From Geosiphon pyriformis uo1 (lineage: Eukaryota; Fungi; Glomeromycota), in assembly GCA_016748015.1 (NCBI GenBank), contig JAAOMT010000678.1, positions 101,015-165,014 of the forward strand: a stretch of 64,000 nt of DNA, read 5' to 3'. Below, piece by piece: positions 12,401-64,000 of the stretch. Made by a program: the position numbers and the translations under genes. The notes beneath the pieces were generated by a model. That model saw only the letters and a list, made by a program, of their open reading frames with translations, was not told the origin of the DNA and searched no databases. Numbering within the stretch: the stretch's first letter is position 1; every line of letters begins with the position of its first letter.

Positions 12401-12573
12401 TACTTTGTGTAGTTATTTTATAGTAAAAGTCAACTCTTTTTTAAAAATTGCTTATTTAGAAGTTTACTAATAATGTGTAATTATTTTGCTGTGAAAATTA
12501 ACTCTTTTACAAAAATTTTATCTATAAACTATTCTAATATATATAATAAAAAATAAAATAAAAATAAAAAAAA
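9500..12573 (+). mobile_element. Extremely eroded retroelement-derived DNA ending in the same 3' UTR and A-tail as the LINE at 3148
   Basis: 12220-12573 aligns in reverse with 3148-3490. The upstream part is too AT-eroded to assign. Confidence 0.55.
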
Positions 12574-13173
12574 TGTAAAAGAAAAATTTTTGTTTAAGAA
12601 ATTGTTTTCTGTTTAGGCTTAGAATAATTAATAGATTATTAAAATTAGTAGCTAGTCAATTTTAAAACATTAATTGAGATTTAAAAAATTTCATATAATA
12701 ATTAATTACAATAAATTATGTTTTAAAATATTTAATGCTTTATTAATTTGTACTAAAAAACTTATTTTAAAGAAGATAATTCTAAAATATAATATATTTT
12801 TTCGAAAAAAAAAGCTTTTTTTTTATAAACTTGAACTTTTCTTTTTGCTATAATTTTGATAAATTAAAGATATATTTTGGCAAACTATAAATTATTTTTA
12901 CAAACTATTAGTTATTTTAGTAAACTGTTAAATTATTTTATGAAATTTTACAAATTTTAACAAATTCTTGAATATTATAAAGTTTAAAATATTGTATAAT
13001 CTAATCATTATTTTTGTGTATTTGTATAAATTTAGTTACTAATTAAATTTTTGATATTAATAAGTAATTAATTAATAAATATTAAATTGAATTAATAATA
13101 ATATATGTTAACTAATAATAAAAATTATAAAAATAATTTTATGTTAATTATTGACTAAATTCTATTGATAACA
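12574..13173 (-). repeat. 3' LTR of the second Gypsy copy (~600 bp)
   Basis: Ends tgtaaaa (12574) and taaca (13173); matches 2521-3147. Confidence 0.8.
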
Positions 13174-16100: not shown

Positions 16101-17200
16101 AACAAAATACATATTGAAAAGTATTGATATAATTAAGATAATAATGCTAAAACCAAAATATTTTTTTAAATTTATGATTTTCATTAGTGTAATATTAAAT
16201 ATTAAAAGAACCAGATTTATTTTGGTATTAATAATTTTTGAAAATCTTGGTTATTCTTAAAGAAATATAAAATCTTGAACTATAAATATGATTTTAATGA
16301 TTACAAAGTTTTTTGTTTAGAAAAAAATTTGGTTGTAAAATCTTAAATAGAGTATTATTTAATGTTAATAAAACTGCTAACATACATTTTTGTTTTACCA
16401 AGCAGCAAAAATATATAAAACTGAGACTGTTAAAAATATAGCTCTTATTATTAAGATTGCTATTTTATAATAGAGGTTATAGTAATTTTTAGATTTGAAT
16501 ATTAAAAAATAAAAAATAACTTGTCAAAATTATTAATTTATATTCTAGATTTAAATTATTTTTATATTAATTAAAATAATATGTTTATCTAAAAAATTTA
16601 TAAAATAAGAAAAATTTTATTTTTACACAAAAAATTACAATAAAATAATGAATTTTAATAAAACTTTCAAGTTTTTTTTTAAAAAAATCTTTTCAACAAT
16701 AATTAAGCTTTAAATTTAATATCTAGAAATTTTATACAAAGCTTGTAATTAATTCATAATATATTTAGTTTATTATTTTATCTTAATATAAATATTAAAG
16801 ATGAATAAAATATGTGTTATTATAAAATAACAATAATATACAATACCAGACTTTATTTTTTTATTATTTATAGTAAAAAAACAGAATTTTATAACTTTTA
16901 TATAGCCCTTTAAAATCCAATCTTTATACAAATAATATAAAATCCAAACTTTAAACATGCAAATAGTTAAATATTCATTAGCTAAAAATTTTATAGCTTA
17001 AAGTTATTGAAAAAAATTTAAATAAAAGTATATTAAAATTTTCACAAATTGGCTTAATTATTTTTATAAAAGAATATTTAATAAAATGGTTTTTTAAAAC
17101 TTATCACAGCTTAACATATTAAATTTATTTTTAAAAAACTTTGGTTTATAAAAGTTATTATTATTGTTATAAATATTTAAATAAAATAAATATTATTTGT
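12574..17200 (-). mobile_element. Second copy of the same Gypsy family, inverted and heavily C>T/G>A mutated (3' LTR, extra ORF, integrase, RNase H, RT remnants)
   Basis: Collinear reverse homology to 1-3147. ORF 14564-14755 (..LLYYLQTNRLVECFN) matches the integrase. No 5' LTR was recognised and the right boundary is approximate. Confidence 0.85.
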
Positions 17201-18036
17201 TTACTAAGTCATATTTGTTTAAACTGATATAATTAATCTAATAAAATAAAAAAAGTGTAATGAATATTTTTTAATATTAATTAATTTAATTTTTGACGAA
17301 AATAAATCTGATAAATTAAAAAAGTAATATATATATATATTTTAATATAGTTAAAAATTCAAAAAAGTATAAATGACCAATTAAATGGTTTCATATTTGA
17401 GTTTTTTTAGTATTTATTTATTGCAATTTTATTTAATGTTAAAATTTAAATAAATACTTTAAAAACTTATCAATAAAAATTTTAACAATTATAAACATAA
17501 ATATAGTTATAATTCAGTTTAATAAATAATACTTAATACTTTTTTGGTAAAAAATATTAAAATATTAAAAAAAGTTACAAAATAAGAAATAATTTGGCAT
17601 CTACTTAATTAGCTTCTGTTTATTTACTATATAAATTTTTAAAATATTCAAGAATTTAAATGTATATTAAATTATCTAGTATAAATTTTATTTGGTTTTT
17701 CATAATAAAGTTTTACATTTATGGTTAACAAAAATTTTTATCAATAGTATTAAAATAAAGTATTTTGTTAATTAATTATTTAATATTTAAAATAATTAAG
17801 CATAGTTGTTTTATTTCAATGTACATTTTATTAAAATCTAAATCAGCTGCAACTATAACCTTTTTAAATTTCAAGTACATGTATAATGAAATCTAAGCCA
17901 CTTAAATCAGAATGATTTTCAATATCTATTTAAACGCTATCTGTATAACCATGCCATAACGGCGAAAATTTTTGCTCTTCTGGTTAAATACTATACACTC
18001 GATTTAAAAATTCCGCGACTATATCATCATAAAATA

Positions 18037-20399
18037 ATGTCTTCAGCCGCCAAGTTACCTTTGCTAAAAACACCAACGTTACCAGTATCAGTCGTCGAAT
18101 GGTTTGAAACCTCTATTCGTGACAAACAGATCAAATATTTTGAATACAAGAAATTTCATAACAAAAAACAGCTTGGTGATGAAGCTTTCAGCGCGTTAGA
18201 GAAGGTAAATTATACTATAGGTGGTATGGATATAATATTTGCATTGAAAAAACTTAAACGAGTCCCAGAAGATGATAAAACAGAAATAGAAGAATTCATA
18301 AAAGAGGTCTGAATGAAAATTTTTTTACATGATTAGTAAAGTGAGAATTGCTATATTTTTTATGCTAAAAAATTCCTAAAAACTTTTTAGCTGAAATTCC
18401 TGCAAGATATTGATTTTTTTCCCTACATTCAAAGATTTTATGGTCTTAGCAAAACTATAGAAGGTATTTATTCTCAAGGCTCTATGATAAAATTTATTTT
18501 ACAAATCCTAACCTTACTTTATGAAAATGCTTTAGATAATAATATAAAACATATTTTAGTTTTTGAATACGCTAATGGAGGTTCTTTGCGTGATTACCTA
18601 TCATTAGAGTTTCAAAATATGAATGGAAAAGAAAAGCTTCGGATGGCACAGGAATTAGCAAGGGGAATTCAATGTCTTCATGAAAACCAAATGATTCATC
18701 GAAATCTTGTAGGTTTTACACTTTGATATTTCAAAAGCTATTTAAAGATTAGACTCCACCACTAAATTGTTTATTTTTAGAATTCATCAAATATTTTAGT
18801 GCATAACAAAACGATAAAAATATCCGATATTGGTCTTCCGAAAAATCTAAGTGAAATGCTAGGCTTAGCCAATGAGGTTAAAGGCCAACCTGCTTACATA
18901 GACCCTCAATGTTTTAAAGATGAACAATTCCTTCGAAATAAGAAATCAGACATTTATGCTCTGGGCGTCCTCCTATGGGAATTAACAAGTGGTCGCTCAC
19001 CATTCAAAAATACTAAAAAGTGGACACTTATGTGTAAGGAAATTTTAATTTAGCACATTTCTTTAAAAGTTCTACTTATATGTAAAAACTTCCAATATTA
19101 TTAGTCCGAATTGCTAATGGTATACGAGAAACTCCTATCGAAAAGACACCAACTGAATATATTGCATTGTATAAAAGGTGTTGGAATGAATTACTCGATA
19201 AACGGCCTAGCATCAACGAAGTGAACGAAAAACTCGAGGGAATTCAATGGAATTCGGAACATGCTTTGAGTTCTCAAACGGGCTACGTTGAATTAACACC
19301 GCAGTTAACAAGTGAAACCACCTTAGTAAGCTCAATGGGTTTGGCTAATACAAGCATCATGGCTCTTTTACAAGACATTTTCATTATAATCAACGAAGGT
19401 TTAAACATCTATACATATGAAGACATCTCAAAAATAATTCCTCGGGTAGAAAAACACCTTACAAATACTGGGCAAAGTTCCACAGATCTTTTCGATTCTA
19501 TAAAAGTAACTCAAATCTCATCCAATTCAGTTTTTGTGCTTGGTTTTTTTTACCAATTTGGAATTGAGATTGATATCAACTTGGAGCAGGCGTTTTTAAA
19601 ATATCAGAAAAGCGCTTCTCAAAAAAACCCCTTGGGACAATTTTTCCTCGGAAAATGTTATATGGAGGGTACCGGCACTGAAAGAAATAATGAAAAAGCA
19701 GTTGAATGGTATACCAAATCAGCGGAAAATGGACATTCAAATGCACAATATAACCTTGGGGTTTGCTATGAAAATGGTAAAGGAGTAACCAAAGATCTTT
19801 CAAAGGAAGTTGAATGGTATACTAAAGCTGCAGAAAAAGGACACTCAAATGCGCAAAATAATCTTGGAGTTTGCTATAAAATTGGGGAAGGAGTGACCAA
19901 AGATCTTGCAAAAGCAGATAAAAAAGCAGCAGAAAAAGAACATTCAGTTGCACAGTTTAACCGTGCTTCTTGCTATAAAAATGGGAAAGGAGTAACCCAA
20001 GATCTTGCAAAAGCAGTTGAATGGTATACTAAAGCTGCGGAAAATGGACATTTAGATGCGGAAAATATTCTTGGAGTTTGCTATGAAAACGGGAAAGGAG
20101 TAACCAAAGACCTTGCAAAAGCAGCTGAATGGTATAAAAAAGCAGCGGAAAAAGAACATGTAGATGCACAGTTTAACCTTGCTTCTTGCTATGAAAATGG
20201 GAAAGATTTTGCAAGAGCAGTTAAATGGTATAAAAAAGCAGCGGAAAAAGAAAATGTAAAGGCACATTATAGCCTTGCTTCTTGTTATGAAAATGGGAAA
20301 GGAGTAACCAAAGATCTTTCAAAGGCAGATGAATGGCGTACAAAAGCATCGCAACTACGTACAAAAGTAACAAACGATTTGACGTTTAAACTTTTATAG
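18037..20399 (+). CDS. Tyrosine-kinase-like domain plus Sel1-like repeat protein (5 exons), predicted pseudokinase
   Basis: Exons ~18037-18306, 18391-18463, 18536-18708, 18781-19033 and 19105-20399 with GT-AG introns. Kinase motifs FALKKL, FEYANGGSL, AYIDPQ, KSDIYALGVLLWEL and YKRCW. About 7-8 Sel1 repeats (AQYNLGVCYENGKGV..KAVEWY.KAAE). Confidence 0.92.
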
Positions 20400-26599: not shown

Positions 26600-29500
26600 C
26601 ATATATGCATTATAACTGATTTTATTTAAATTTTTATAAAGCATCAAGCTTTATAAATATGTATAATTGTTATTAAAATATAAAAATCAAAATAGAAAAT
26701 TGTTTAAATTATTTATCATTAAAATTTACAAATACTGTATTTAATTTTATTGATTTTCATAATTAATAGACTCATTTCATAATAGTTGTCTCCATTGTCT
26801 TCTTCTTTTTAATTATCAATTTCAACAAATTTATTAGTATGACTTAATTCTGCTATGTAAATTTTTTTAATTAGATAATTACTGTGTTAAGTTATATTAT
26901 TGGATAAAATCTATACTATTATAAATTACCATTTTTCTAATTAATAATACTGCTAAAATTTTGGCTTAATTCTATTAATTCAACATATCTTTTTTAAATA
27001 TTGTAGAAAAACTGTAGACTAATATTTAAATTCAAATTTTCCAAACAATTAATATTTGGCTTTTTTAATAATGTGTAGTTATTTTGCAGTAAAAATCAAA
27101 TCTTTTGCAAAAAATTTCAATTATAAATTCTTTCAATAATATGTAACTACTTAACTGTAAAAGGCAAAAAATTTCAACTGTAATCTTTTCAAAATGATAA
27201 ATTTAAAATGTGTTTTTTTAATATGAAATTTTAAAATTCAAAAATTATTTTACCAAAAATTAATTTTAATTGTGTATTAGTTTCGAGTTTTTGGGTTTAT
27301 TAAAATTTAAAAACCACAATAATTTTTAAAATTAATTAATTTAAGATTAAGAAAGAAAAAAAATAAAATACATTTTTTGAAAAAAAAAACTCTTTTTTTA
27401 TAAATTTCAATAAACTATTTATTATAATCTATATACTTTTTGTAAATCAATACTAATTTTGCTTAACCAATAACAACCAATTAATAACTAATTAAAAAGA
27501 TTTAATAAATAAATAAATAAATTATTTAATAATCCTCCAAAAATAAAAACCACGATAATATATTGTTTATAATTTAATTTAAAAAAAATTAGGCTTTTTT
27601 GAAATTAAAATTAAATTTTTTATTTAACAGTAATTTTAAATATTTATTAAATATTTTACTTATATTTTCTGGTTTTTTACTGATATATTATTATAAAACT
27701 TTATACTTTAAAACAAGATCAAAATATTTTAGCACTGCTGTATTAAGCTTTATTAAAATTTAAAGAAGTTTTATTATTTTTTAAATAATGTTTAGTCATC
27801 AGAAATAGTGGTAAATCAATGATAATATTATAATAAATTCTTAAAAACTTAATATAAAACCAGTTTGTATGTTTTTTTAAATAAGTAAGAAGAGTTAAAT
27901 AATTATTAAAAATTAAAAAAAATAATTTAATTTAATTTTTTAAACTGCTATTTCATAAAATTTATTAATATAACCAAAATAATAGAAAAGTTAGTAACAT
28001 AAAAAAACATTTATTAGTGTAAATAAAAAAACAAACCATTTATTTAATAATATATAAATTTTTTTGGTAAAATTATTAATTAAAAATGTGTCACAAAAAA
28101 TTTGGCATTATAATATGAAAATATTTTTGATTAGCAGTTTTATAAAAAAAATTTACATATGTGTCTTTGTTTTAGTTTTGTTTATTTTGCTATATTAATA
28201 ACTATTTTTTCTTATATCAACTATGAAAAACAAAAAAATTCTACAATTTTGGTTATATTAATAAGTCTTATAAGATAACAGTTTGGAAAATTATTTTATT
28301 CTATTTTTTCTAACTTTTAATATTTGTTTAGCTCTTATTACTTATTTAAAAAAACATTTAAAATGGTTTTATACCAAATTTTTTTTAAATATATTTAAAT
28401 AGAAATTTGAATCTCTTTTGACAAAATTAACACAGGTTTTAATTATAAACATATAGATAATTTTTATTAATTTTTTTGTTTTTTATGATTTGGATAAAAA
28501 ACAAAAAATAAGAGATAAAATATAAATTAATTATTATTAAAAAAGTTTTTTAAAGCTTTATTTGATAATATATTAGAAATTTTTTTTAACAAATTTGTAT
28601 TTGTATCACTACTAATATAGTTAATACACTAAAATAAGCAGAGCTTAATGTTTTAATATATTAATTCTGAAAATACTTATGTAAAAGCAAAGTATTATTT
28701 CTTTTATACCAGACAAATTTTTATTTATATATAATATTAATATTAATTTATTTAAATAAGTGGTTATTAATTTCTAATGTAAAAAAATATTTTGTATGGA
28801 AACAGAAAAAAACTATTTTTATTAAGTGAAAAGTTTAAAAACCAAAATATTTTTTCTTTAAATATTAATACTATATTAATTTTAAATTTAATTAATCTTA
28901 TTACTTTTGTAGGTATTATTCTTATCAAATATATTATTATTCTAATTTGTTAATAAAATGTTGATTTCTTTGTTTGCTTTATTTTTATGCTTAAAATTAA
29001 TAAGAAAATATTTATATCTTTTAGAATTATTCAAATTATAAACAATATTTAATAAATAAATATTATAATAAACATAACTGTATTAATAAGATTTCTTTAG
29101 TTTAATAAGCAAATTACATATTATTAATTTATATTGTTTGCTTGTCTTTTGATAAGCATTTAAAATCATATGTCTTTAGTTTAATTATATATTTTTTTGA
29201 TCAACTTGTTTCAAAAATTGGTTTTCCTAAAACCTAAATAAATTTACAATGGCTTTTAACAAGCTTATATATATGTTTTAATATATTAACATAGTAGTTA
29301 AAGTCATAGAATCTAATATTCAAAACAACTTTTTTGACATATTTTTAAAAAAAAGTTATTATAAAATTTCCAAGTTTTAGTAGGTTACTAAAAAAAATTA
29401 CTTTAGCAAAAAAAACATTTTTTGAAATTATAGTTTTAAGAATATAAACAATATTAATGCTTATTTTGACAATTGTATATTGAGTATAAAAATTATTCAG

Positions 29501-32000
29501 ATAAAATTATGTGAACAATAAAACTAATGTCTTGCTAAAACTATCAATTACATAAAAACACATAATGTTTTTTATAATAGTATAATAAATTAAAAAGGTA
29601 ATACTACTAAAATATAATAAATTAAGCTTGCTAAAATTGGCTATAAGTTTTTTTTGGTAGTTTTAAGATTGTTTTGTGCAGCTTTTTTTTTATTTTTTAT
29701 TACTAGTATATTTTTAACATATTCAAGAAAATCAGATTTATTTTATATTATTACTAAAATACTTTTTGAATTTTTTAGAAAAAAAAATGTAAAATTATTG
29801 TTAAACATAGAAGCAAAAACTAAAAAATACTAAAAACAGCACACAAAATAAAAACATATTTTTTAATTTTGTTACAAAAAAATTCGATTTGAAAATCAGA
29901 ATTACTGCAAAATAAATTTAAAAAATATATAATTAATATATTTATAAATTTAACCAGCTCTATTTCGAATTTAATTTTGGTAAATTTTATTTTAAAAAAG
30001 GCAATCATAATCACAAATGCTAATTTATTTGTTTTATCTATTTTATTATAATAAAGACAGTTATTAAGTTCTTAAAACTAGTATTTGTTAAAATAAAATA
30101 AAAACAGCTATTATGAAAATTAAGATTATATTTTTCTTAAATCTAAATATAAACATACAAAAAACTTTACAAAAAAAAATATATTAAGAAAATTTAACAA
30201 TTAACCAGCATAAATTAGCAAAGTATTAAATAATTTAATAAATTTTTTCATAAAAACTTAATCTTGTTGGGTTTTATTGTTAAAATTGTTAAAAATTAAG
30301 TTTTGAGTTTTATATATCAATTATAAATTGCAATAATACTATATTTTAGTTATATAAAATAATTGTTACAAAAAATTATAATTAAATTAAATATAATTAC
30401 AAGTTAATTTACTTGAATCTTAAAAGTATAATATTAAACTTAACAAATACAATACAAAAAAATTCAAATTCAAAAATTAAATTAAAATTTAATCAAATCA
30501 AATAATACTAACTATTATCAGTTTTTACTAGTTTGCTGTTTAAAAACTAGACAAAACTTGATAGCTTATCTTTATAAATAGAAAATTTATTATTTAAAAG
30601 TTAAGTTTTTTTATTGTATTTCTGTTAATTAATTACTTAAAAATTAAACCAATAAACAAATTATGCTAAAAAAATTATTGTTTAAAAACAAATATAAGAT
30701 TTTTTTTTTATACTTTCAAATATTATTTACTATTTAAAAGCTGTATAAACAATATAAGTTTTACTAGTTTGTTGTTTAAAGACTATATAAAACTTAATAA
30801 TTTATTTTTATAAATAAAAAATTTATTATCTAAAAATTAAGTAAAGTTTTTTTATTTGTATTTCTGTCAATTAATTATCTAAGAATTAAACCAATAAACA
30901 AAATTGTGTTAAAAAAATTATTGTTTGAAAACAAACATAATATTATTTTTATATTTCTAAATATTATTTATCATCTAAAAACTATATAAACAATGTAAAT
31001 TTTACTAGTTTGCTATTTAAAAATTATACAAAATTTGGTAATTTACTTTTACAAATAGAAAGTTTACTAATTAAAAATTAAATAAAATCTTTTTACTTGA
31101 CTGATTACTTAAAAATTAAACCAATAAACAAGATTATATTAAAAATATTACTATTTAAAAACAAGTATAATATCTTTTTTTTATACTTCTAAACATTATT
31201 CATTGTTTGAAAATTGCATAGACAATATAGATAAAAAAAAATCTTTATTAATTTGTTGTCTAAAAACTATATAAAGCTTAATAACTTATTTTTACAAGTA
31301 AAAAGTTTATTATTTAAAAGTTAAATAAAATTTTTTTATTTGTATTTTTGTTAATTGATTATTTGAAAATTAAATCAATAAACAAAATTGTATTAAAAAA
31401 ATTGCTGTTTGAAAACAAACATAAAATTTTTTTTATACTTTCAAGTATTATCTACTATTTAAAAACTATATAAACAATATATGTAAAAAAAACTCTACTA
31501 ATTTGTTGTTTAAAGATTATACAAAACTTGATGGCTTATTTTATAAGTAAAAAATTTATTACTTAAGAGTTAAATAAGGTTTTTTTTATTTGTATTTTTG
31601 TTGATTAATTATCCAAAAATTAAATCAGTAAACAGAATTATGTTAAAAAAAATTACTGTATAAAAACAAGTATAATATCTTTTTTTTATACTTTCAAATA
31701 TTATCTACTGTCAAAAAACTGTATAATTAATATGAGCTTTACTAGTCTGCTGTCTAAAAACTACACAATACTTGGTGGCTTATTTTTACAAGTAGAAAAT
31801 TTATTACTTAAAAGTTAAGTAAATTTTTTTTACTTGCATTTCTGCCAACTGATTACTTAAGAGTTAAACCAGTAAACAGAATTGTGTTAAAAAGATTACT
31901 ATTTGAAAACAAGCATAATATCTTTTTTTTACACTTTCAGATATTATTTACTATCTAAGAATTGTATGGACAATGTAAATAAAAAAAAAAGAGAAAAAAA
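26600..32000 (+). mobile_element. Highly eroded repeat block, probably nested retroelements, ending in a tandem array and A-tail
   Basis: Near-total loss of G/C. LINE 3' UTR-like motif tgtgtagttattttgcagtaaaaatcaa at ~27072. A-tail at ~31978-32000. Confidence 0.5.
30521..31990 (+). repeat. Tandem array of 6 units of ~235-250 bp
   Basis: Units begin with variants of tttactagtttgctgtttaaaaact at ~30521, 30757, 30999, 31243, 31492 and 31736. Confidence 0.9.
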
Positions 32001-36796: not shown

Positions 36797-38486
36797 TCAC
36801 ACTATAATTTGATCTTGAATTATATCCGAGTTATTCGTAGCAAAAAATTCTCCATCCATATTCTTCTCGCGCCTGTTTTCAGCCGTTCCAAAAAACTTAC
36901 TTTTGCCTTTCGTTTTTTTGAACTTATAAAAAAAGAAGCCACATATTGCTAAAATAATTATAACTACAGGTATTAGAACACTTAAAATAATGTAAAGTCT
37001 CTTGTTATGTGACTTTGATCTAGTAATTATAGCTTTCACTAAAGGAATATTGAGATCATGACCATTAACATTTCCTAAAGAAAAATCTGTTTGGGTAATA
37101 TTCACGATATCATGTTGATTAGTCCAGCTTTGTGTTGTCATATTGAAGATAATCATGTTTGAAAGGGTACCCAACAATGGATCCGATTTTGCTGGAGGAA
37201 TACCTCCATATATCTAATTGAATTAATTCCCCACCACCCAAAATATTTAAATATATATATTGATTAAAAATTGAAAATCATCTAAATATAAAAAAAGCAA
37301 AACTAAATGCGAAACAAAAATCATACCAACACAGCATCAGAATTAGAAAATTGAGCATAACTAGCCCGGTTCCTTAAAGATGTTAGATTACCAGATTGAT
37401 TTGATGGTATTTTAGCCTTATCAAATTCCATCCTTGTTAAATCAAAAGGAATCACCGGAATTTGTTTATTTGAATCTTTTTCACCATCATCAGTGACGAC
37501 TATATATAATTTCTCATTTAATGAGCCAACAAAAGCATCACTTATTATTGACGAAAATGTTGACTGAGGAGAAAGCCAGCCATATATTTCATTATAAATG
37601 TAAGCTATAGAAGTGCCATTTGAATCTGGTGGTGCTTGTCCTCCAAACACAAAAGTATTACTTTTTATATTTGCGATTCCAGGAGTATTTGTAATATAAT
37701 CCTAAATCAAAAATAGAATGCATAATAGTATTTAACAAAGAACGAAATAGTAAGAAAAATTATTTTCCAAAATTTTAAAAAAATTTACCGGATTACTAAT
37801 TTTATCCAATTTCCAAATTTCTTTAGAAATATCTAATTTAAGAACCGTGGGATTCATAGTTGGATATATCCAATGAGCAGTCCAAATTAAAAAAACATTT
37901 GGTTCTATGAGAACAGCTCGAGGACCAGGTATAGAAATTTTTTCAAGTTCTGGTGGAATGGCAGTTCTAATATCAGGTTGATTCCATTCTTTTTTTTTAA
38001 AATTGTACCATTGTAATGGTTGAATAGGCGAATTTTGATTCACAGTAGACCTCCCACCAAATATAATGAGAAAACCGGCATTTGGCTCAACTACACATGC
38101 TCCATCGCTGATACCAATAGCTCCTTTACTACTTTCTCTTTTCCAGGGAATTGAATCTGTGGTAAATGGTAAACTCGCCGAATAAAAAAGTTCAGTTTGT
38201 TGATCTGGTAAGTGATACCAGTCTTTACTACCACCAAATAAGTAAAGTTTATTTTGATAAGTCACCTAAAGAAATTATTAATTAAATTAAAAATGTTAAT
38301 AATATATCAAATAAAATATTTTAAAAAGAAAGAAAGAAAGAAAGAATGAATGAATGAATGAATGAAATATATTACCATGCAATGAGAATGTCTAGTACCA
38401 GGTCCTTCATCTCCTAGCACTTTTGTAATTAAAATGATTAATTCTATGGTTATGATATAACTCAAGAAAGATATTTGAAGACGCAT
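36797..38486 (-). CDS. Signal peptide + kelch/galactose-oxidase-like beta-propeller + single TM protein
   Basis: ATG at 38486 (MRLQISFLSYIITIELIILITKVLG..RHSHCM). Kelch-like NKLYLFGG, LIIFGG and FVFGG. TM segment LYIILSVLIPVVIIILAICGFFFY followed by a basic tail. GT-AG introns. Confidence 0.85.
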
Positions 38487-46713: not shown

Positions 46714-48907
46714 TCATATACTTGCCCTTTGAAGATTCGCCACTGGCTTCTCGAATGGTGGCTCCTTATACTCAGCCAGCCCATTCCCATTAGGTAACGG
46801 CGAGGCCGCACTCGGTTCACTAAGCATACTATTAATTGTTGCTTGTGACATCTCTGGAATAAATGATCTTCTACTCCCTCTATAATGATACTTCCAAAAC
46901 AAGAATCCACCAAATGATATAATTGATGCCCCCACCACTGAAACAATAATAATTCCCCATCTTCGAAGATTTCGTAATTCAGAATCAGAAATTTTTGAAG
47001 CTTCCTCACGGCGTTCTTCTTCGTCTGTTTCCGAGGCTTCATGTTCTTCGTGGGTTGTTTGTCTACTGGTAGGAGAAGGTGGTTGAATTGGGATTTGATC
47101 CAAATTTTGAGGTGGTGATTGGCTTGAGGCAGATGAGGCAGAGGATTGTGATGGGATTGGTGGATTTGAACGAGTGAGTAAGTTGGTCCATTTGAAATTA
47201 GAGTTTTTAATGTCGAGGATATTAATTTTTGAACTTGGTTTATTATTTCGTAATCCTAAAGAAAAAAAAACATTATTATTATCAAGATCAAATGAATTTT
47301 AATTAAATAAGTGATTTCGAAATAAAAAAAAAGTTGGAACAACTTACCAAATGCAATAATCATGAAATCATCGTAAAGGGTCGCTGTGTGAAATATTATG
47401 GAGCCTTTTGGTCCTTGTTCCTGATTTTCTATTACCGGTCGTCTCCATCTTAAAGTTATTATATCCAGTACTAACAAATTATCATCTGAACTATAAAAAT
47501 GAATAAAGAAAGTGTTGAGGAAATCTTGATTCATCACAATTGCATTGAAATCTTTTAAAGCAAATATATTTGCCTTGAGTCCGAATTACCAGCACCAGCT
47601 TCGTTATTACTACCGTATATTATGATTTCATGTTGATTTGATGCTATAAAAATGAATAAATTATGATTTTCTATCTTTAGGAAAAGATTAAAATCTGTGC
47701 TAGGTTATATAATTTTTTTTCGATAGCTTACCCAGGACAGCAGAATGCCCCGCCCGCGGGGTTAATAGAACGTTAGAGATTGATTTCTAAAACAAAGGAA
47801 TGTAAAATTTCGAAATTTATTTCAACCCCCCCCCCCCCCCCCCCCTAAATATCAATATTTGGTGTAAAATTTCACGACATACCGCCACGTTCCACTGTGA
47901 TGCCACTGTATCAAATATAAAAATCTAAACAATAATATAATCAGATTTTTTAAAGAGAGAATTAAAAATATAATTTTAATCATTAGTTAATCATGGGTAA
48001 ATATACCTCATTCAGCTCCCTAGCCTTTTGACTCCCGGTCCAATAACCACCTAAATAAAACACCCGACCATCTGGAACCAATGTTGCAGTATATCCATAA
48101 AATGGTTGAGGTCCATTCATAATATAGCCCCACGTTGAATTTTTTGTATCGAAAATGTACATGTTATTATCCATTTTTGATATATTTTGACCGCCAAAAA
48201 TATAAATTTTCTCGTTGCTGTCTTTTATTGAATTAATTTGGTTTCGTGGTGTGGGAGAAATTTTAATAGAAAGATTGGTAATTTCTGAAGTATTTGAAAT
48301 TCTTTTAGATTCCAGAGATAAGGAAGGAGGAAGAGATATTGTGTAGATATTGTTGGATATTTTTGAGATATTTTTCGAAGAGCCTATAACCTAAATTTGA
48401 TTGGGATTTAAATTGAGTTGAGTTGATTTGAGTTGAATTAAGTTAAGTTGAGTTGAAATTGATTTAAGTTTAGATTTTTAATAAAAAATCGTTCGTACTC
48501 ACCCCACCAAAAAGAAATAATATTTGATGCCTATCTTGATCAAATCCAATCGACGCCGCAGCTGAGTGAACACCTTCAAACTCATTGTTCTTATCTTGTT
48601 TTATGCTTTTGAATTTTACACTCGTATCGATAAACTCCAAACTCTTATTCTTCCCAAAATTTAAATCATCCTTTGATAAATCTAAGTAAAATATTTCACG
48701 AGAAATTCTCAAAGAATTCTTAGGAGCGGTAGACAACTGACCACCAATGAAGTAAATATTTTGATTAAGTAATATTGCAATATGTGATGAGCGTGGTTCT
48801 GGTGTGAACGATGCTTGTGATGTTGAATATGTTAAGTTGGAAAGTATCATTAGGGAAAGGAAAAATGGTTTTAGAAATGATGAGATTATGAAATACTTGA
48901 AAGACAT
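46714..48907 (-). CDS. Signal peptide + kelch-repeat beta-propeller + Ser/Pro stalk + single TM protein
   Basis: Motifs PRSSHIAILLNQNIYFIGG, YTATLVPDGRVFYLGG, PRAGHSAVL and FHTATLYDDFMIIAFG. TM segment WGIIIVSVVGASIISFGGFLFW. About 7 exons. Confidence 0.9.
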
Positions 48908-55639: not shown

Positions 55640-57148
55640 TTATTTAAGGAATCCCTTCTGATTAAGATTTTTCGGGCTACAGTCATTCATTCTTACCCCA
55701 AAGTATGGTTCTTTATGTATAAAATTACCATGTACATTATTTATTGACTGACCAGCATTGCATTCCTTTGAAAATTGAAAATAATAAAAATAAGTTTGTT
55801 TGATTGACATTTATCCATTAGTAACAATTTTAATCAAGACTAACCTCATTTTCTCCAGACATGACCCCATACGGAAACTCGAGTTCAGCACGTAACTCAT
55901 GGTATTTCCAACTTTGTGACCCATAGTCAAACCCTCTACATTCATAGAATGAATCTTCTTCATTATTTTTCTCCGTTAGACATTCACATGATCCTGGTAA
56001 AATCCAATACTCTGTCTCAAAGTGTTCCAAAAGATCATTTTTAACCCCAGGCGGTGGAAAATGTGGAACGTGGTCATTAAAATAGGTGATTCGTTGAACT
56101 TTCAATAATTTGTTGACCAGTCGGGCAAATACAACGTTACCAACCCTCGGGGCACCAAATGTAGTAGTTGAAACTTTCAAGGCAGAAAGGTTCATTTGAG
56201 GAGATACACCAATATCAGACATCAAAAATGATTGGATTCTCCATGTCAGTCCAGCGATTGTTGCATAAGCTATCAAATTTTTTTTTTGGTAAATTAATAA
56301 TTTTTATAAAATTTTTTCATTAAGAGAACATACCACCACCAATTGCATGCCCAACAAAGGAGATGAGCTGAACATTCAAGCTCTGATAGCCAATTAGTAA
56401 AGATTGAATTCGAGTAAATAACGATTTACGAATCGCTAAAAAATCAATTTGCCAATCTTTATCGACCCTAATCAGGCTATTGGATTTGAATCCCTCTACT
56501 TCATACGTTATCAGTTGAGTGCTTCGAGCTGCCCATTGATCTTTTGTCAGTTCAGGTCCTTTGATCAGTGAATTGAATAAATCAAGTTTGAGTTACTCAT
56601 TTTATTAGAGTATATTGATGATGAAAAATTCGAGTTATATAATTTTTGTTACCCTTAAAATTTATAATCAATGTTTTGGTGAATACTTCCATATTTATAT
56701 CAACTTCAAGATAAAATAACCAAAGCAATTAAATTAGCCTTTTAAAATTCTCAGAGTTAAGTAAATATTCAAAACCTTTCAAACGGCCACTAGGGACATT
56801 TGCACCAAGCTCTTTATCATCATTGCAATAAATATAATTCGCGAAAAACGCTGCCAACTTCAATTGTCGAAAAGAATTAAAATCCTGTTTAATATCAATT
56901 AATCGTTTTGATTTTCCATTCACCGCACGATTGTTGAGTAATGTCAAGGGACCAGGAACAGAACTAGGAATGGATGATATGCTTGATTTATATAATCCAT
57001 GACTTAGGTTATGATGCAGATTGGCCTTTTCTAAGCTTTTTAGACTCCGCCATGATGAAACTGGTACTTTTAAAAACTGATGAGTTTGAATAAGAATTAA
57101 AAGAAAAAATATTAATAAGCAATTATTTCTATTGAAAATTTTGTCCAT
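55640..57148 (-). CDS. Class-3 lipase (Lipase_3) homologue, multi-exon, nucleophile elbow GHAIG
   Basis: Signal-like N-terminus. Motifs FVGHAIGGAY, TTFGAPRVGN, RITYFNDHVPHFP, EYWI and HKEPYFG. GT-AG introns. Confidence 0.88.
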
Positions 57149-59942
57149 TTCAAATCTAAGTCTACTAGTTTTTCAAATACTCCAAATCTCAAAATAAATG
57201 TTATATATAAACGCATGGAATGCACGATCGATGTGTGTGTTTGTTTGATAGGAATGCAGGATGATACGGTGTATTGCAAACAAATTAATTTTGATAAAGA
57301 ATATTCGTGTTTAGATTAAACCTTTTGGTGATTTTAATCTTTTGATAAAGGTTTCGGAGCAATGGAAATAAAAGCAAGAATTCAAGAAAAAAGAATATTT
57401 AAATGCCCACTAAATTTTTGTAAGCAATGCGTTAACTTTTTATACAGTTAAATATTTATTTTGTGAAAATGTGATGCCTAAACTGTATAAGAAAAAGGGT
57501 TTATTACTAGATATAAAACATTTGTAAAAAAATATCCATTTTTAAATTGAAATTTGGTGTGCTATTATGTGATAGTTACTTAGATTTTCTGCGTCTGCTT
57601 CCTCTCCATTGAAAGAGATTTCGGATGTGTTTATGATATAAATCATTAAATAACTTAGACCTAAATTTTATTTCATATGCATTTTTTCCCAGTTATACCC
57701 TCAACTTATGCAATATTCTTGAAATAGGTTGCCAAGTTTTATTATCTGCTAAGAGCTTTAAAACCATTCGACTTGATTGTAAAACTTTATTTCTAAATCG
57801 GTACCTTATTAATAAATAATTTAACGTGTTATTAAGAAATTCTTTATGCCTCAATATTTTGCAACCTCCCAAGTTTTACCAATTTTAGTACAAAATTAAT
57901 AATAATTTTTGGGTAACTTTGCATCAATTTCAGTATTTGATATTTAAACTGATCATTATTACTTCGAATAAGCTATCCAAAAGTACCAATTTTAAATCTG
58001 AAAAATAAGAGAGTAAAAGTTGTCTATATATGTAGATCAAAGAAATTTTGAGAATACTCTTGGTATTAATTGCCAATGTTAAACCATAAGGGGTTAAAGA
58101 TTTGCTAACAATACCTAAACATAATAACATTTATATATTCTATATTCTGTAGAGTTTTAATATCAAATATTCGAAATATTCAAAAATACAGCAATTTTTT
58201 ACAAAAGCCTTATTGCTATGAAAAGTGACTTTTATTTCTTAAAATCTAATATGCTTGAAAAAAATAAGTAAATTCTGAAAGTAAACTTTTTGTTTTGAAT
58301 CAAATACATGTACATTTTTGTAATAATTATGCTAATTTTTAAAACTGAAAAGAATTATACCAATAATAACAACTTTAGAAATATTTTAAAAAACTTTTAA
58401 TTATAAAAATTCTATCAGTCTCGATTTTAATAATAACAATCTAAATAGTCTAAATAAGAAAACATTGAATCTTTCAGATTAAAATTCTAAAATTTTCAAC
58501 TTAAAAACAATCCGAAGAATTGAAGTTTCCATTATGATTGAAAAGTATGTACATATTTCAAAAAAAGAAATTGTTTGTCTTATTTCTTATTTTAAAATTA
58601 TTTAGTTTGCTATTTTGAATGCCAAAATAAGATCAAAAATATTAAACCAAAATTATATGTTAACCTTTATCTTATTTTTATTGTCATTAAGAAAGTTTAA
58701 AAAACTTTTAAGCCTCGTTAATAATAGTTGAAAATCTGAAAACTTGACATATTAAAAGTTCAAAACCATAAAATTCTTTGTTTTTTATAAGATTGAAGTT
58801 TACAATGCCAAAATTTATTATTTTATCTAAAATGTAAATTTTTTTACCTTTAATAATTCAAAATTTATTAATATATAAATATAATTATAGGCTCACACAC
58901 ACAAAAAAACGGTAAAAAAATATGGAAAAAAAACCTTATAAAATAGTTTATATCACATTTAAATATAAAAATTTTCATCTGTTTCAAAAACAAATAATAT
59001 TGTATTTACAATTTATTAAAAAAGTTTCAAATATCTCAAACCAATAGTTCAGCAAATTTGATGATTGAAATTTTACTTAAATGATAAACTTATGAGCAAA
59101 AATATTTGAAAAACCAAACCTTTTAGTGTTTCTAAAAATCTTATTAGAAAAATTTATCTTAAATTATATTTTCTAATATATTTGATTCAATATATAAGTT
59201 TATTAATTCTTCACAGATATTTTACTACAAAATTTATTTAATAGCAGCATTATAGTTTGAACCTAGTTAGATTTACCGGTAACAACAATATAGGATTTAC
59301 TTCTGTGCTTTAATTTGAGGCTTAATTCAGATTCTAGCGAGTCTCTTCCAATTTCTTTGATTTAAAGAATCTTTTTAAATAATAAATTTTCAATTAAAGT
59401 TGAAGCTACTCATGTCATTATTTTTGGTCAGTTTGTGAATTAATCAATCAATTACAGATAAAAAACAAATATTATAAAAATTATAATGAATATCTTGCTT
59501 CACCATTTTTTACTCAATCAATGCTCAAAACAAAAATTCTCGTTGGTCAGGAAAAATATTATAATTCTTAAGGTTTTCTTTCTTCACGAAGTTCATTACT
59601 AGAAAGATTTTATTAAACATTTATAAAACTAATGTCATTATTTAAAAGCAAGTCGAATATAACAGTAATAAATGATTTAGTAACAACATTGCCCTAATGC
59701 TAATATATAAACCAGATTAAAATAATATCTATATAGATGTACTCTAGTTGTAAATAGTCTAATAACTTTATCATTATTAAAGACTAGATAATCATGTAAA
59801 AGTTCAAATTTAGCATTAAATTAATTTGGGTAAAATCCGAAAGTTCCTCTCAAAAAAGTATGAACCAGAGGTAATAGCCATAAATTTCGGTTCATTATAA
59901 ATTGGTGATTATGATAGTTATTAATGCGAATAATATTCAACT

Positions 59943-60074
59943 TTACATAATTGAACATTGACCGGTGCCGCTACCATCGTCTGGGTCACCGGTAGGTCCT
60001 TTAATAGAGCCGTTACCAGGAGCGATAATCGTGAGAGGATTAAAGGAGGATTGATTGTTGGTAGTTGGTTGCAT
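59943..60074 (-). CDS. 43-aa CaaX peptide, candidate farnesylated pheromone precursor (copy 1)
   Basis: MQPTTNNQSSFNPLTIIAPGNGSIKGPTGDPDDGSGTGQCSIM*. GC-rich island, A-rich start context (gaaaatATG), upstream TATAAAA, and a paralogue differing mainly at synonymous sites. Confidence 0.85.
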   Translation of the reverse strand: MQPTTNNQSSFNPLTIIAPGNGSIKGPTGDPDDGSGTGQCSIM

Positions 60075-60175
60075 ATTTTCAAATTATTTGATTTATTTTG
60101 AATGTTACTGCTTTGCTTTTTTTCTCTTTATTAGTTTGGTTGAATTGAAAAATTAAATTGGAAAAGTACCACTAG

Positions 60176-60317
60176 TTTTATAGCAAAAAATCATCTTAAC
60201 ATCTAGTACATGTATGCGAAACAATGTTAAGTGAATTATAATGTGAAAATGCAAAAATCGATAGAATATCACAGATAATAGATTTTGACATATGCATTGT
60301 TAAGATATCTCAACAAT
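60176..60317 (-). promoter_or_regulatory. Promoter of copy 1: TATA box, AACAATG site and inverted HMG-site palindrome
   Basis: TATAAAA at 60176-60182 (minus), AACAATG at 60220-60226, and CATTGTTAAGATATCTCAACAAT at 60295-60317. All are conserved in copy 2. Confidence 0.65.
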
Positions 60318-60599
60318 ATCCCAAAAGATTTAAAAAGCATATTAACTTTCAAAATCAGTTATAGTATTGATTTCTAATATTATATTCTACTCGGCGTAAC
60401 TAAAGTATAAGTTCAGCTATTAAGGAGGTTTTTATAACAATAATTGCTAAAAAGTTGTTATTCTGCATTGTGAATCAAAATCGCCCTTCTTGCCTTTCAT
60501 ATTGTTAATTTGTTGCAGCTAAAATTACTTGATCAATCTTTTAGCAATAAACTAAAGAATGTTTCTATCACGAAAAACCAAATTGAGTTTTTAAATAAT

Positions 60600-62600
60600 T
60601 TATCAAAATAAATTCTCAAAATAAACCACTAAAAAAATTTTTCTCTTTCCTAATTTTATGACCACGACTAGAACAAAGAGTAAAAAGGTTTCAAATGTTA
60701 TTTTCCCTATAGTAACTAATAAAGTTTCAACAAAAGAAGGTTTCTCTGCTATCAAAGCAGCTAGTCAAAACGTTCTGGCAACATTCTCCTTAAATATTGA
60801 TAGTGAAAAGCTGTCTTTGGTGGCTTTTAAAGTATTTTTCTCATCTTTGGCTGGTGGTTCTTTTTCAGTCAAAGTTTTTTTCAAGAGACGCACTTGGGTC
60901 AGTTCCAATGTTGTTTTTATTCTCTCTAAGAGCCCCAAAGTCTTCAATAATAGGCCATTTAACAAGCTGGTTTTTTCTGTTTTTACCACTAATACTATCA
61001 CTACCACTACTACTTTACAAATGGCCAAAAAAACTAAAAACTTCAAAAAACAGCAACAGTTATTTGTGTTTGCTATTGTTACACTAAACTTCTTTGTGGT
61101 TTTAGATAAGATCTTAGATAAAATCTCTCTAGCAGCAATTAGCTCTCTTTTTAATGTAAATAATAACAACAATAGCATATCTTTAAAATAAAAATTAATT
61201 ACTGGCTGTATTGCCAAATGTGATGTCTTTTAGCAGATCATTGCCAGTTTTAAAAGCAACTTATTAAGTTACTTAATTTTAAGAACTGAGCTAATTAAAT
61301 GGAAACAAAATCAACCTTTTTTTCTTTGTTTTTTGGTACTGTCTTTAGTAATACCTAAAAGACAATTTCCAGTTGTTAAATGTTTTTTGGATAAATAATC
61401 TCTATTTTAATATCTGGTGTTATATTTAAAATTAAATTGGTTTTAATTAGTTTTTTATTCAAGTTGCTGTTTAGCTTTATTGAACTTAAATCAGTTTTTA
61501 AACACAATATTAAATTAAAGTCTTTTTTAATTGTTGTTATTAATATTGTTATTAATGATTTTCTTTTTTTTGATTTTACTTAAGATTACAAAAATTTTTA
61601 TAGTGACTTTTAATTTTTTTTTTTATTTCTGTTGTATTTTATAATATTCTTCTTAATATATTTTTTAATAATATTAAAAACACTCTTGGTGTTTTTGGTA
61701 TTGTTATTTTAGTAAAGTTAAATCCTAGTAATTTGTAATAATATGTTATTGTTAATTTTAAAAACTTTTTATTTGTTACTATTATTTTTAATAACTAGTT
61801 TGTGTGAATTAAAAAACAGTATTAAGATTTTTTTGCTTAACCAAAAAGAAATTATTATTTTAAAAAACAATTTTAAGACCAAATTAGTCAATTTTTTTTT
61901 TAGTTATACTGTTTTTAAAATCAGTAATCTGATTTTTCAAGTTAATAATTATATTTGTTTTATTTTCTGCTTTTTTAATTTTTATTGTTATTAATGCTTT
62001 GTTATTATAATATTTGAATTTTATAAATTTTTGAATCTTTTTATAGTAAAAACTAGAATTTTATACAAATATTGTATTTAGTAAAAAACTTTTAAATGTT
62101 GTTATTGTTACAAGTATTAGAGTTTTAATTATTTTTTTGCTAATTACAAGGTGTTATTATCTATTTTTTAAGTTGTCTATTAAAATTACTGTTGGCTTTA
62201 AGTTTTTTGTATTATTTTTTATTAGTAAAAAATTTTATGCTAAGATTTTTGCTCTTTTGGCTTTTTTTTTTGTTATCTTTTTGGCTGTTTTTGTTATTAA
62301 TTTTGTTGTTAAGTCTAAATTAGATTGTTTGGATTTTAAATTGCAAGTTTGGCTGTTTTAATTAAATTTGTTATTAAACTAATTGGTTTTTTGGTTACTT
62401 TGGTTATTATTCTTTTAAACACTTCTTTTGTCTTATATGTAGAAATTAAAAGTTTGGTTTTTATTATCTAAGATAAAATGTTTGTTCTTAATAAGACTCT
62501 GGATCAGCTTATTTTAAATGTAGCAATAGTTAAAACTGAATGTAGTTTTAATAATGTTTATATAGATGATGTAATATTGATCTATTTGATAATAAATTTT
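60600..62600 (+). mobile_element. 5' fragment of a LINE-like element (ORF1-like region), increasingly eroded downstream
   Basis: ORF 60658-61191 (MTTTRTKSKK..) has the same Ser/Thr/Lys-rich, transition-eroded character as the other ORF1 regions. The right end is approximate. Confidence 0.6.
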
Positions 62601-63517
62601 ATACTAGACTAATTACTTTCTGAAAATGTCAACCTAATAGTATTAAGTCTAATATGAATGTAATGCTAAATAATTAAGTGACTTAATTTAAAATAATAGT
62701 ACACTAGTTTTTATTATAAATAAAATATCTTCTTAAAATAGGTTTTCCTTTTTAGATTTAACATAGTTTAGCTTAGACTGAATTTATATCTGGTCATATA
62801 TAGAAAGCATATGAACTACTTCTAATTTAAGTTATTGAGTTTAATATATTGTATTAAATAGTGGTTAGACTATATATTAAATATAACAAAAAATAAAAAT
62901 AAAACACTCAGACATTTGGTACAAATACTTACTCTTACTTTAAAACCAAATTGGATGAGAATTTTAAGACTATAGCTACTACCATTTATGTGTAAGTTGT
63001 AATTCAAGTTGATAAACTTTTACAAATATTTTGCATATTCATTGAAAATACCTATATAAACAAAATAGTCAAATAGTTTTAAAACCAAAACTTAGAATAG
63101 ATTTAATTGCTCCTATTTCATTTTCGAAATATCTTATGTTTGAACCAGTTTAAAAAAACAAATTTTTCAATCGAAAAAATGTACTTTAACCCCAATAGCT
63201 GGAAAAATTTTTTACTATAATTCAACTAACCTTTCATTATCATCACTTTGTTTATAAAATAGTTTATCACAGCCTTTTTAGCAAATCTATCCTTGAAATT
63301 TGCCGATAGTGGAATAGGAATATCAATAGCGTATTTTCTTCAAAAAGAGATAATTTTGAATTCAAATTTATTTTTTTATTAATTTGCAAATTAGTGGTAC
63401 ATAGCGTAAAGCTAATTGGATAATCAAACTTAGTGTAGTACTTTTAGTTCTTGGTACAACATTCTCACGTTTTCTATATTAGTTAATAATTATTTTGAAA
63501 GACAATATCCTTGGAAT

Positions 63518-63663
63518 ATTGTTGAGATATCTTAACAATGAATCTGTCGAATTAATATTTAAAAAGAATAGATTTTTCAATTTTAACATTCTGATTCACT
63601 TAACATTGTTTCTAATACATGTACTAGATGTTAAGATGAAGGCTTTGATTTTTTGCTATAAAA
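63518..63663 (+). promoter_or_regulatory. Promoter of copy 2: inverted HMG-site palindrome, CATTGTT site and TATA box
   Basis: ATTGTTGAGATATCTTAACAATG at 63518-63540, CATTGTT at 63604-63610, and TATAAAA at 63657-63663. Confidence 0.65.
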
Positions 63664-63763
63664 CTGGTGGTGCTTTCCCAATTTCTTTCTCAATTCAACT
63701 AAAATAACAAAGAAGAAAAGAGCAAAGCAGTAACATTCAATATAAATCAAATAATTTGAAAAT

Positions 63764-63895
63764 ATGCAACCAACTACAAATAATCAATCTTCCTTCAATC
63801 CTCTCTCGATTATCGCTCCTGGTAATGGCTCTATTAAAGGACCTACTGGTGACCCAGACGATGGCAGTGGCACCGGTCAATGCTCAATTATGTAA
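63764..63895 (+). CDS. 43-aa CaaX peptide, candidate farnesylated pheromone precursor (copy 2)
   Basis: MQPTTNNQSSFNPLSIIAPGNGSIKGPTGDPDDGSGTGQCSIM*; 122/132 nt identical to copy 1. Confidence 0.85.
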   Translation: MQPTTNNQSSFNPLSIIAPGNGSIKGPTGDPDDGSGTGQCSIM

Positions 63896-64000
63896 AGTTG
63901 AATATTATTCACATTAATAACTCTCCACTCTTGACTATCACCATCCAATTTATCATCAACCGAAATTTATGCCTATTATCTCTGGTTCATACTTCTAATA

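Follow-up and report, generated by a model that had tools for sequence, protein, structure and literature searches.

Divergent CaaX peptide genes of Geosiphon pyriformis belong to a multicopy family of candidate a-factor-type lipopeptide precursors shared with Ambispora

We studied a 64,000-nt stretch of the Geosiphon pyriformis genome (the window, i.e., the whole stretch at its full length), which carries close to its end two small CaaX peptide genes, termed copies A and B. Their coordinates are collected with those of all other features in Table 1. The two copies are divergently oriented, with start codons 3.7 kb apart. Direct reading of positions 59700-64000 together with the listing of open reading frames (ORFs) provides for both the peptide MQPTTNNQSSFNPL(T/S)IIAPGNGSIKGPTGDPDDGSGTGQCSIM, i.e., 43 residues and then TAA. 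An earlier note on this DNA had described two 132-nt ORFs that end in CSIM, lack a signal peptide and stem from a Glomeromycotina-like fungus. We reproduced coordinates and peptides exactly, and the source is indeed a member of the Glomeromycotina (Archaeosporales) and thus related to the arbuscular mycorrhizal fungi. Judged by the hydropathy scale, hydrophobicity is too low for a signal peptide anywhere (maximum 9-residue Kyte-Doolittle mean 1.19).

Copies A and B sit within an inverted repeat, whose arms (59913-60164 and 63674-63925) are 90% complementary and whose conserved patches extend to 59856-60324 and 63511-63994. Their coding sequences (CDS) differ at ten sites, namely nine synonymous ones and one conservative Thr/Ser change. 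Compared with the commonest CDS of the family described below, copy B shows 14 synonymous and no non-synonymous differences. A third local copy (G000:C622:166753-166881) is located 1.7 kb past the window end, and its CDS is identical to that of copy A. This identity indicates a putative, more recent inverted duplication flanking the plus-strand copy B.

A six-frame search of the 128-Mb G. pyriformis assembly identified at least 37 loci of this family, including 33 intact 43-codon ORFs. The four degenerate loci comprise two with stops, one with a deletion that still ends in CLIM, and one fragment. These counts are lower bounds; the arrays on contigs C729, C578 and C551 reach the contig ends. 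Most copies are arrayed with 2-4 kb spacing. DNA shared between copies is limited to about 600 bp around each ORF, the spacers are unique and the edges of conservation are graded. What has been multiplied is therefore a gene including its control regions and not a sharp-ended transposon. Membership of copies A and B in an extensive, clustered family of short genes without introns is confirmed, far beyond what chance would provide, as would be expected from the pheromone interpretation.

To describe the coding status of the family, we compared the intact copies with each other. Among the 33 copies there are 29 distinct CDS, but one and the same peptide is encoded by 24 of the copies. Pairwise Nei-Gojobori estimates, computed over the 31 most similar copies, are 0.53 for dS and 0.008 for dN (dN/dS 0.015), and the variable sites are distributed as 5/2/32 over the three codon positions. 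Nucleotide identity is 0.905 within the CDS vs. 0.66-0.76 in the flanks. CSIM is present in 33/33 intact copies; the codons of Cys40 (TGC/TGT), Ser41 (TCG/TCA/TCT) and Ile42 (ATC/ATT/ATA) vary synonymously only and Met43 is fixed. We are virtually certain that these are real genes under strong selection. A non-functional repeat or transposon fragment with a chance open frame would be in accordance with the high copy number and with the repeat-rich, AT-rich surroundings. It is refuted, however, by the dN/dS at the given dS and by the codon-position variation. The conserved unit furthermore consists of promoter and CDS with graded edges between unique spacers, and the peptide is conserved in another fungal family (Ambispora, see below), such that we regard the probability of this explanation as negligible.

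Both ends of the ORF are well defined. The stop is fixed at codon 44 in 33/33 copies (31 TAA, 2 TGA). An in-frame upstream ATG is found in 0/33 copies, and the frame stays open ahead of the ATG for anything between 1 and 52 codons. For 16 closely related copies, the variable sites of the CDS are distributed as 0/0/18 by codon position, while the 200 nt downstream show 10/10/10 and 14/14/14, i.e., no codon periodicity. This downstream DNA contains indels of 1, 8, 11 and 22 nt as well as stops in all frames. Given the fixed start and stop and the non-coding downstream DNA, the concern that the ORFs might be terminal exons of longer genes, which had been raised as a reason to discard the pheromone interpretation, is not upheld.

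The converse arrangement, i.e., the ORF as first exon of longer spliced genes, is what GenBank annotates for Geosiphon (G9A89_*, 50-792 aa) and Ambispora. Several deposited models begin with the ORF and splice out near its 3' end, where the GTAA at the ORF end resembles a splice donor. Against this stand the models themselves, which use differing donor sites and carry mutually unrelated tails (7 to about 750 residues). The fixed codon-44 stop speaks against it as well, in particular its two TGA instances, which destroy the donor-like GTAA. The codons just before the stop vary synonymously only, the DNA behind it shows the missing periodicity, frameshifting indels and stops in every frame reported above, and the Ambispora copies likewise end in CaaX plus stop. 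We thus consider a first-exon role very improbable. Judged from the reading frames, the annotated spliced tails are gene-prediction artefacts on a very short ORF, and the public gene models at the family loci are wrong.

The respective G9A89_* models (P0001-P0012 and P0015; contigs C729, C578, C551, C700, C704 and C622) are mis-spliced into unrelated tails or neighbouring genes. In P0015, a Kelch-like protein is fused to a degenerate family copy. The same kind of mis-splicing is observed for the Ambispora models.

We also studied how far the family extends beyond Geosiphon. A profile search run exhaustively against 1.84 billion representative proteins finds relatives solely in Geosiphon, Ambispora leptoticha and A. 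gerdemannii, and a word-index search with a broader profile provides the same result, i.e., Geosiphon and Ambispora only. According to the DNA, the six Ambispora ORFs encode 39-43 residues and end in CVIM, CVIV or CIIW with the stop directly after. Invariant in the alignment of both genera are M1, N6, Q8, S9, F11, N12, I17, N21, G26, P27, T28, D30, Q39, C40 and I42. Since Cys, stop and layout are shared by both genera, the peptide has persisted across two Archaeosporales families. A loss of the CaaX Cys in homologues, which was named in advance as a finding that would speak against the pheromone interpretation, is not observed; every intact copy and the Ambispora orthologues retain both Cys and stop. 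Two further kinds of matches were rejected. A metagenome match (L046) reflects chance similarity over SKGPTGDPDDG within a 727-aa ORF that is GC-rich and of bacterial type, and the weak matches P0013 and P0019 of the hidden Markov model are unrelated repeat proteins.

Upstream of the CDS, we derived a consensus from the 33 copies. It comprises an A-rich stretch ahead of the start codon, a near-invariant TATA box (CTATAAAA) about 103-147 nt before the ATG, which gives each gene a TATA promoter of its own, a TATTGTTTC block at about -160, a ACATTGTT-N9-CTTAACAATG palindrome at about -245 to -220 and an additional ACAATG at about -295. A ACATTGTT-N-AACAATG element is present in the promoter. For copy B, the context before the ATG is A-rich and an in-frame TAA is found 12 nt upstream.

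ACAATG/CATTGT occurs 1-4 times per promoter in most Geosiphon copies examined as well as in 5/6 Ambispora copies. These sites are located at -150 to -310, and the background is 0.24-0.25 per 400 nt. We take the ACAATG core to be an HMG-box (SOX/MATA-HMG) type of site. HMG-box factors probably drive transcription via the clustered ACAATG sites. For the M-factor genes mfm1-3 of Schizosaccharomyces pombe, M-boxes of the sequence ACAATG/ACAATA, which serve the HMG protein Mat1-Mc, are reported at -150 to -190 (PMC1693924). The parallel between M-factor genes and the family promoters is suggestive, i.e., in both cases multicopy CaaX lipopeptide genes would be combined with ACAATG-type promoter sites. 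In contrast to S. pombe, no Ste11-box (AACAAAG) partner site was seen in Geosiphon/Ambispora, and the coding sequences are unrelated at the sequence level.

Next, we consider the family with regard to the features of a-factor-type precursors. The genes are short stand-alone ORFs without hydrophobic N-terminal stretch, the C-terminal CaaX and its immediate stop are kept in homologues, and several copies encode the same mature peptide (at least 33 intact, 24 identical). An Asn 5-20 residues before the Cys, which is the processing criterion in Ascomycota, is given by Asn21, invariant in Geosiphon and Ambispora. Yarrowia a-factor-like genes were found by CaaX and Asn filters and reach 7-14 copies in some species (Srikant et al., 10.1101/2021.09.28.462209). 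The Geosiphon family passes every filter of that study: its ORF is short and ends in CaaX plus stop, the in-frame Asn precedes the Cys by 19 residues (allowed range 5-20), and several of its copies share more than 85% identity. It differs from the Yarrowia genes in its lineage outside Dikarya and in a several-fold higher copy number.

The absence of a receptor gene from the window, as stated in the earlier note, holds, but one Ste3 gene is found elsewhere in the genome. This intact Ste3 gene (PF02076) shows end-to-end coverage in two exons (148 and 75 bits) with an ATG start and no disruption seen. The lack of any Ste3-like receptor in the genome, a further outcome that was set out as contradicting the pheromone interpretation, thus does not apply. 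For Ste2 (PF02116), the six-frame genome search gave no match; exon-split genes can be missed by this search, and the control gave no match anywhere. Among the pathway orthologues that had been proposed for a search, Ste14, Ste24, M16 proteases (Axl1 family) and ABC-B transporters are present beside Ste3 (Table 1), while Rce1 was not detected (see below). Candidate exporters are provided by many loci with ABC-B-type membrane domains (ABC_membrane). Since most processing genes are universal in eukaryotes, their presence is permissive and not diagnostic; the informative pathway item is the single orphan Ste3. Ste3, Ste6 and the mitogen-activated protein kinase (MAPK) cascade were also reported in Rhizophagus, together with 'no peptide pheromone coding genes' (Halary et al. 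2013, PMC3834313).

Given these observations, the best explanation of the family is that its members are precursors of a farnesylated a-factor-type lipopeptide that would be sensed by Ste3, which we rate as moderately probable. The steps from transcription, prenylation, trimming and export to receptor activation and biological role, as we infer them, would be as follows. The Geosiphon peptide is likely farnesylated because its CaaX is canonical with X = Met and because the Cys is fixed in 39/39 intact members from three species. That is, the Cys40 thiol would be farnesylated by a Ram1/Ram2-type enzyme. Subsequently, the last three residues (SIM) would be removed, by Ste24 at least, and the new C-terminus would be methyl-esterified by Ste14. 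The N-terminal part would be trimmed, possibly after the invariant Asn21, so that an acidic lipopeptide of 19 residues, rich in Gly/Pro and with GQC at its end, would be left. This product would leave the cell via an ABC-B exporter and would be sensed by the single Ste3-type G protein-coupled receptor (GPCR) of the genome. Since a precursor with C-terminal CaaX yields one peptide per gene, the high copy number may represent a route to high output. Concerning its role, mating, hyphal fusion or autocrine self-signalling may be considered.

The pheromone interpretation of the earlier note is hence supported as far as stand-alone genes, multiple copies, strong purifying selection, the kept CaaX and the presence of Ste3 are concerned. 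A pre-Dikarya origin of the pheromone class, likewise proposed there, remains an inference. Among the Dikarya pheromones, we compared the family with S. cerevisiae a-factor (MFA1/MFA2).

In the yeast a-factor precursor, cleavage takes place between N21 and Y22 (PMC2148179); for comparison, we used its mature part plus CaaX, i.e., YIIKGVFWDPAC-VIA. Both systems use short signal-less precursors (36-38 aa in yeast vs. 43 aa) with one CaaX plus stop and more than one gene. Counted from Met1, N21, I24, K25, G26, D30 and P31 are found at the same positions in the Geosiphon peptide. An ungapped comparison that includes the N-terminal MQPxT of MFA1 provides 11/33 identities (shuffle P about 5e-6), which is a lead and not a test. 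The Ste3 receptor class as well as Ste14, Ste24 and farnesyltransferase (FTase) genes are also present in Geosiphon. On the other hand, the Geosiphon peptide has seven extra residues between Asp-Pro and Cys, its putative mature part is acidic and hydrophilic instead of hydrophobic, its copy number is at least 33 compared to 2, and its pro-region is as conserved as the mature region. The MFA1 resemblance could reflect deep homology or shared processing constraints. With precursor layout as well as N21, IKG and DP in register with yeast a-factor, the Archaeosporales peptide may be a true homologue of the Dikarya a-factor-type pheromones and the natural ligand of the orphan Glomeromycotina Ste3. 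We put this forward tentatively and with more doubt than confidence.

Basidiomycete pheromones (Ustilago mfa, Cryptococcus MF, tremerogen, rhodotorucine) provide a second reference. Their mature forms are hydrophilic and rich in Gly/Pro/Asn/Asp/Ser before the farnesyl-Cys, which resembles the Geosiphon peptide. Also shared are multiple, often clustered genes and a Ste3 receptor without detected Ste2. Basidiomycete pheromone genes, however, adjoin the receptor in the mating-type locus and differ by mating type, whereas the Geosiphon genes are unlinked to Ste3 and encode essentially one peptide.

Several observations weigh against a pheromone function. First, linkage to a receptor gene, as in the basidiomycete P/R locus, is not given, i.e., Ste3 resides on contig C642, which holds no family member. 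Nor does the Ste3 promoter contain ACAATG sites. An asymmetry between mating types is not apparent either, as there is a single peptide type and a single receptor. Rce1 (PF02517) gave no match in the six-frame genome search, which can miss exon-split genes. Furthermore, all 43 residues including the N-terminal half are conserved; pheromone pro-regions usually drift, so that whole-length conservation is unusual. Unlike yeast a-factor, the putative mature part has a pronounced hydrophilic and acidic character (GRAVY, i.e., grand average of hydropathy, -1.03). Finally, no homologue was seen outside Archaeosporales in the protein searches, which say little on Glomerales and Diversisporales since 43-aa ORFs are seldom annotated.

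The constraint on the whole 43 residues, beyond the C-terminal mature part, would also fit a farnesylated micro-protein that is not secreted but tethered to intracellular membranes as a regulator or structural element. The CaaX processing genes do not discriminate between a secreted and an intracellular product, given that they are universal in eukaryotes. At least 33 near-identical copies are nevertheless hard to reconcile with a membrane-tethered regulator. In addition, the peptide is rich in Gly/Pro/Ser/Asn/Asp and lacks any polybasic signal, any second lipid signal and any recognisable domain. Its size, the signal-less CaaX layout, the multicopy arrays and the HMG-type sites fit lipopeptide pheromone genes, and the orphan Ste3 in the genome also speaks against an intracellular role, which we thus consider unlikely.

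A secreted lipopeptide could also act independently of Ste3, for instance as a signal to the symbiotic partner or as an antimicrobial or surface-active peptide. Such a role would be in accordance with the very high gene dosage, which points to bulk production, and with the obligately symbiotic lifestyle of both genera; the peptide genes also show no link to Ste3. Geosiphon, however, lives in symbiosis with cyanobacteria and Ambispora with plants, and conservation despite such different partners argues for a fungus-intrinsic target. To our knowledge, there is no class of farnesylated fungal peptide other than pheromones. A secreted product without a Ste3 role therefore appears improbable to us, and precursors of a Ste3-sensed lipopeptide remain the preferred explanation.

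Documented cases of lipopeptide pheromones are so far confined to Dikarya. For Glomeromycotina, only KEX2-processed alpha-like repeat proteins are described (Le Marquer et al. 2019, PMC6339444). Full-text literature searches, the coverage of which is incomplete, brought up no CaaX pheromone for either Glomeromycotina or Mucoromycota. With regard to transcripts, exact-product look-ups of three Ambispora peptides and of the Geosiphon one returned nothing. Systems of this kind are known from Dikarya; new are the candidate occurrence in Glomeromycotina, the very large number of copies and the conservation over the entire peptide length. Sex in arbuscular mycorrhizal fungi is a long-standing open question, for which the Geosiphon/Ambispora family provides a concrete candidate ligand of the orphan Ste3. 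If the homology holds, the farnesyl-peptide/Ste3 pair would predate the split of Mucoromycota and Dikarya. In that case, a pheromone system would still operate in the supposedly asexual arbuscular mycorrhizal fungi; in Geosiphon it would have expanded to more than 30 genes and might serve partner or self recognition before hyphal fusion.

With respect to mating-type (MAT) loci, contig C657 carries a single-exon gene for a 604-aa low-complexity homeodomain protein (G000:C657:365669-365839; L047 4671-6485, minus strand), about 21 kb from two family copies (387080 and 389542). We rejected a MAT linkage via this gene. It is a lone gene and not a paired HD1/HD2-type locus, and such proximity has a chance expectation of about 5% according to our own estimate from the numbers of family loci and homeodomain genes.

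Table 1. Coordinates and occurrence of the features in the window, the Geosiphon genome and Ambispora
Feature	Location	Strand	Remarks
CDS copy A	window 59943-60074	minus	132 nt, 43 codons + TAA; T15; C-terminal CSIM
CDS copy B	window 63764-63895	plus	132 nt, 43 codons + TAA; S15; C-terminal CSIM; equals family majority peptide
Promoter and 5' leader, copy A	window 60075-60324	minus	mirror image of copy B; inverted repeat and family consensus
Promoter sites, copy A	AACAATG 60295-60301; CATTGTT 60220-60226; ATTGTT 60312-60317; TATAAAA 60176-60182	minus	
Promoter and 5' leader, copy B	window 63511-63763	plus	blocks conserved across 33 copies
Promoter sites, copy B	ATTGTT 63518-63523; AACAATG 63534-63540; CATTGTT 63604-63610; TATAAAA 63657-63663	plus	
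Conserved 3' flank of copy A	window 59856-59942	minus	putative 3' untranslated region (UTR); inverted-repeat arms, family downstream analysis
Conserved 3' flank of copy B	window 63896-63994	plus	putative 3' UTR, non-coding; inverted-repeat arms, family downstream analysis
Family copies, contig C729	889-900 kb and 949-964 kb		11 copies
Family copies, contig C578	286-315 kb		5 copies
Family copies, contig C551			6 copies
Family copies, contig C622			3 copies: window pair and one 1.7 kb beyond window end
A. leptoticha copies	L044 6250-6381, 4564-4692, 13232-13360, 14447-14566		four copies on one 18-kb contig
A. gerdemannii copies	L045 8307-8435; L051 10001-10129		two copies
ICMT/Ste14	Geosiphon genome		present
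Ste24, N-terminal domain	Geosiphon genome		present
Prenyltransferase beta	Geosiphon genome		three loci
Prenyltransferase alpha	Geosiphon genome		two loci
M16 protease (Axl1/Ste23 family)	Geosiphon genome		two loci
Sel1/Kelch/class-3 lipase features	window 19167-20399; 37732-38265; 48470-48907; 55830-56276	plus; minus; minus; minus	

Between copies A and B, the window contains a 177-aa plus-strand ORF and an overlapping 150-aa antisense ORF (60658-61217) without Pfam match. Behind these ORFs lies T-rich low-complexity DNA of about 1.5 kb (61200-62500), a stretch that is not common to other family loci. Overall, the window is AT-rich (12-33% GC), and an Rfam scan of it gave no match. Extremely low GC contents (12-16%) are observed for positions 10001-18000 and 28001-32000, which lie between gene-bearing segments of about 25-33% GC. 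Beside the peptide genes, the window holds a Sel1-repeat ORF (7 repeats, E 7.6e-74), two Kelch-repeat fragments and a class-3 lipase fragment, i.e., families that are typical of expanded Glomeromycotina genomes.

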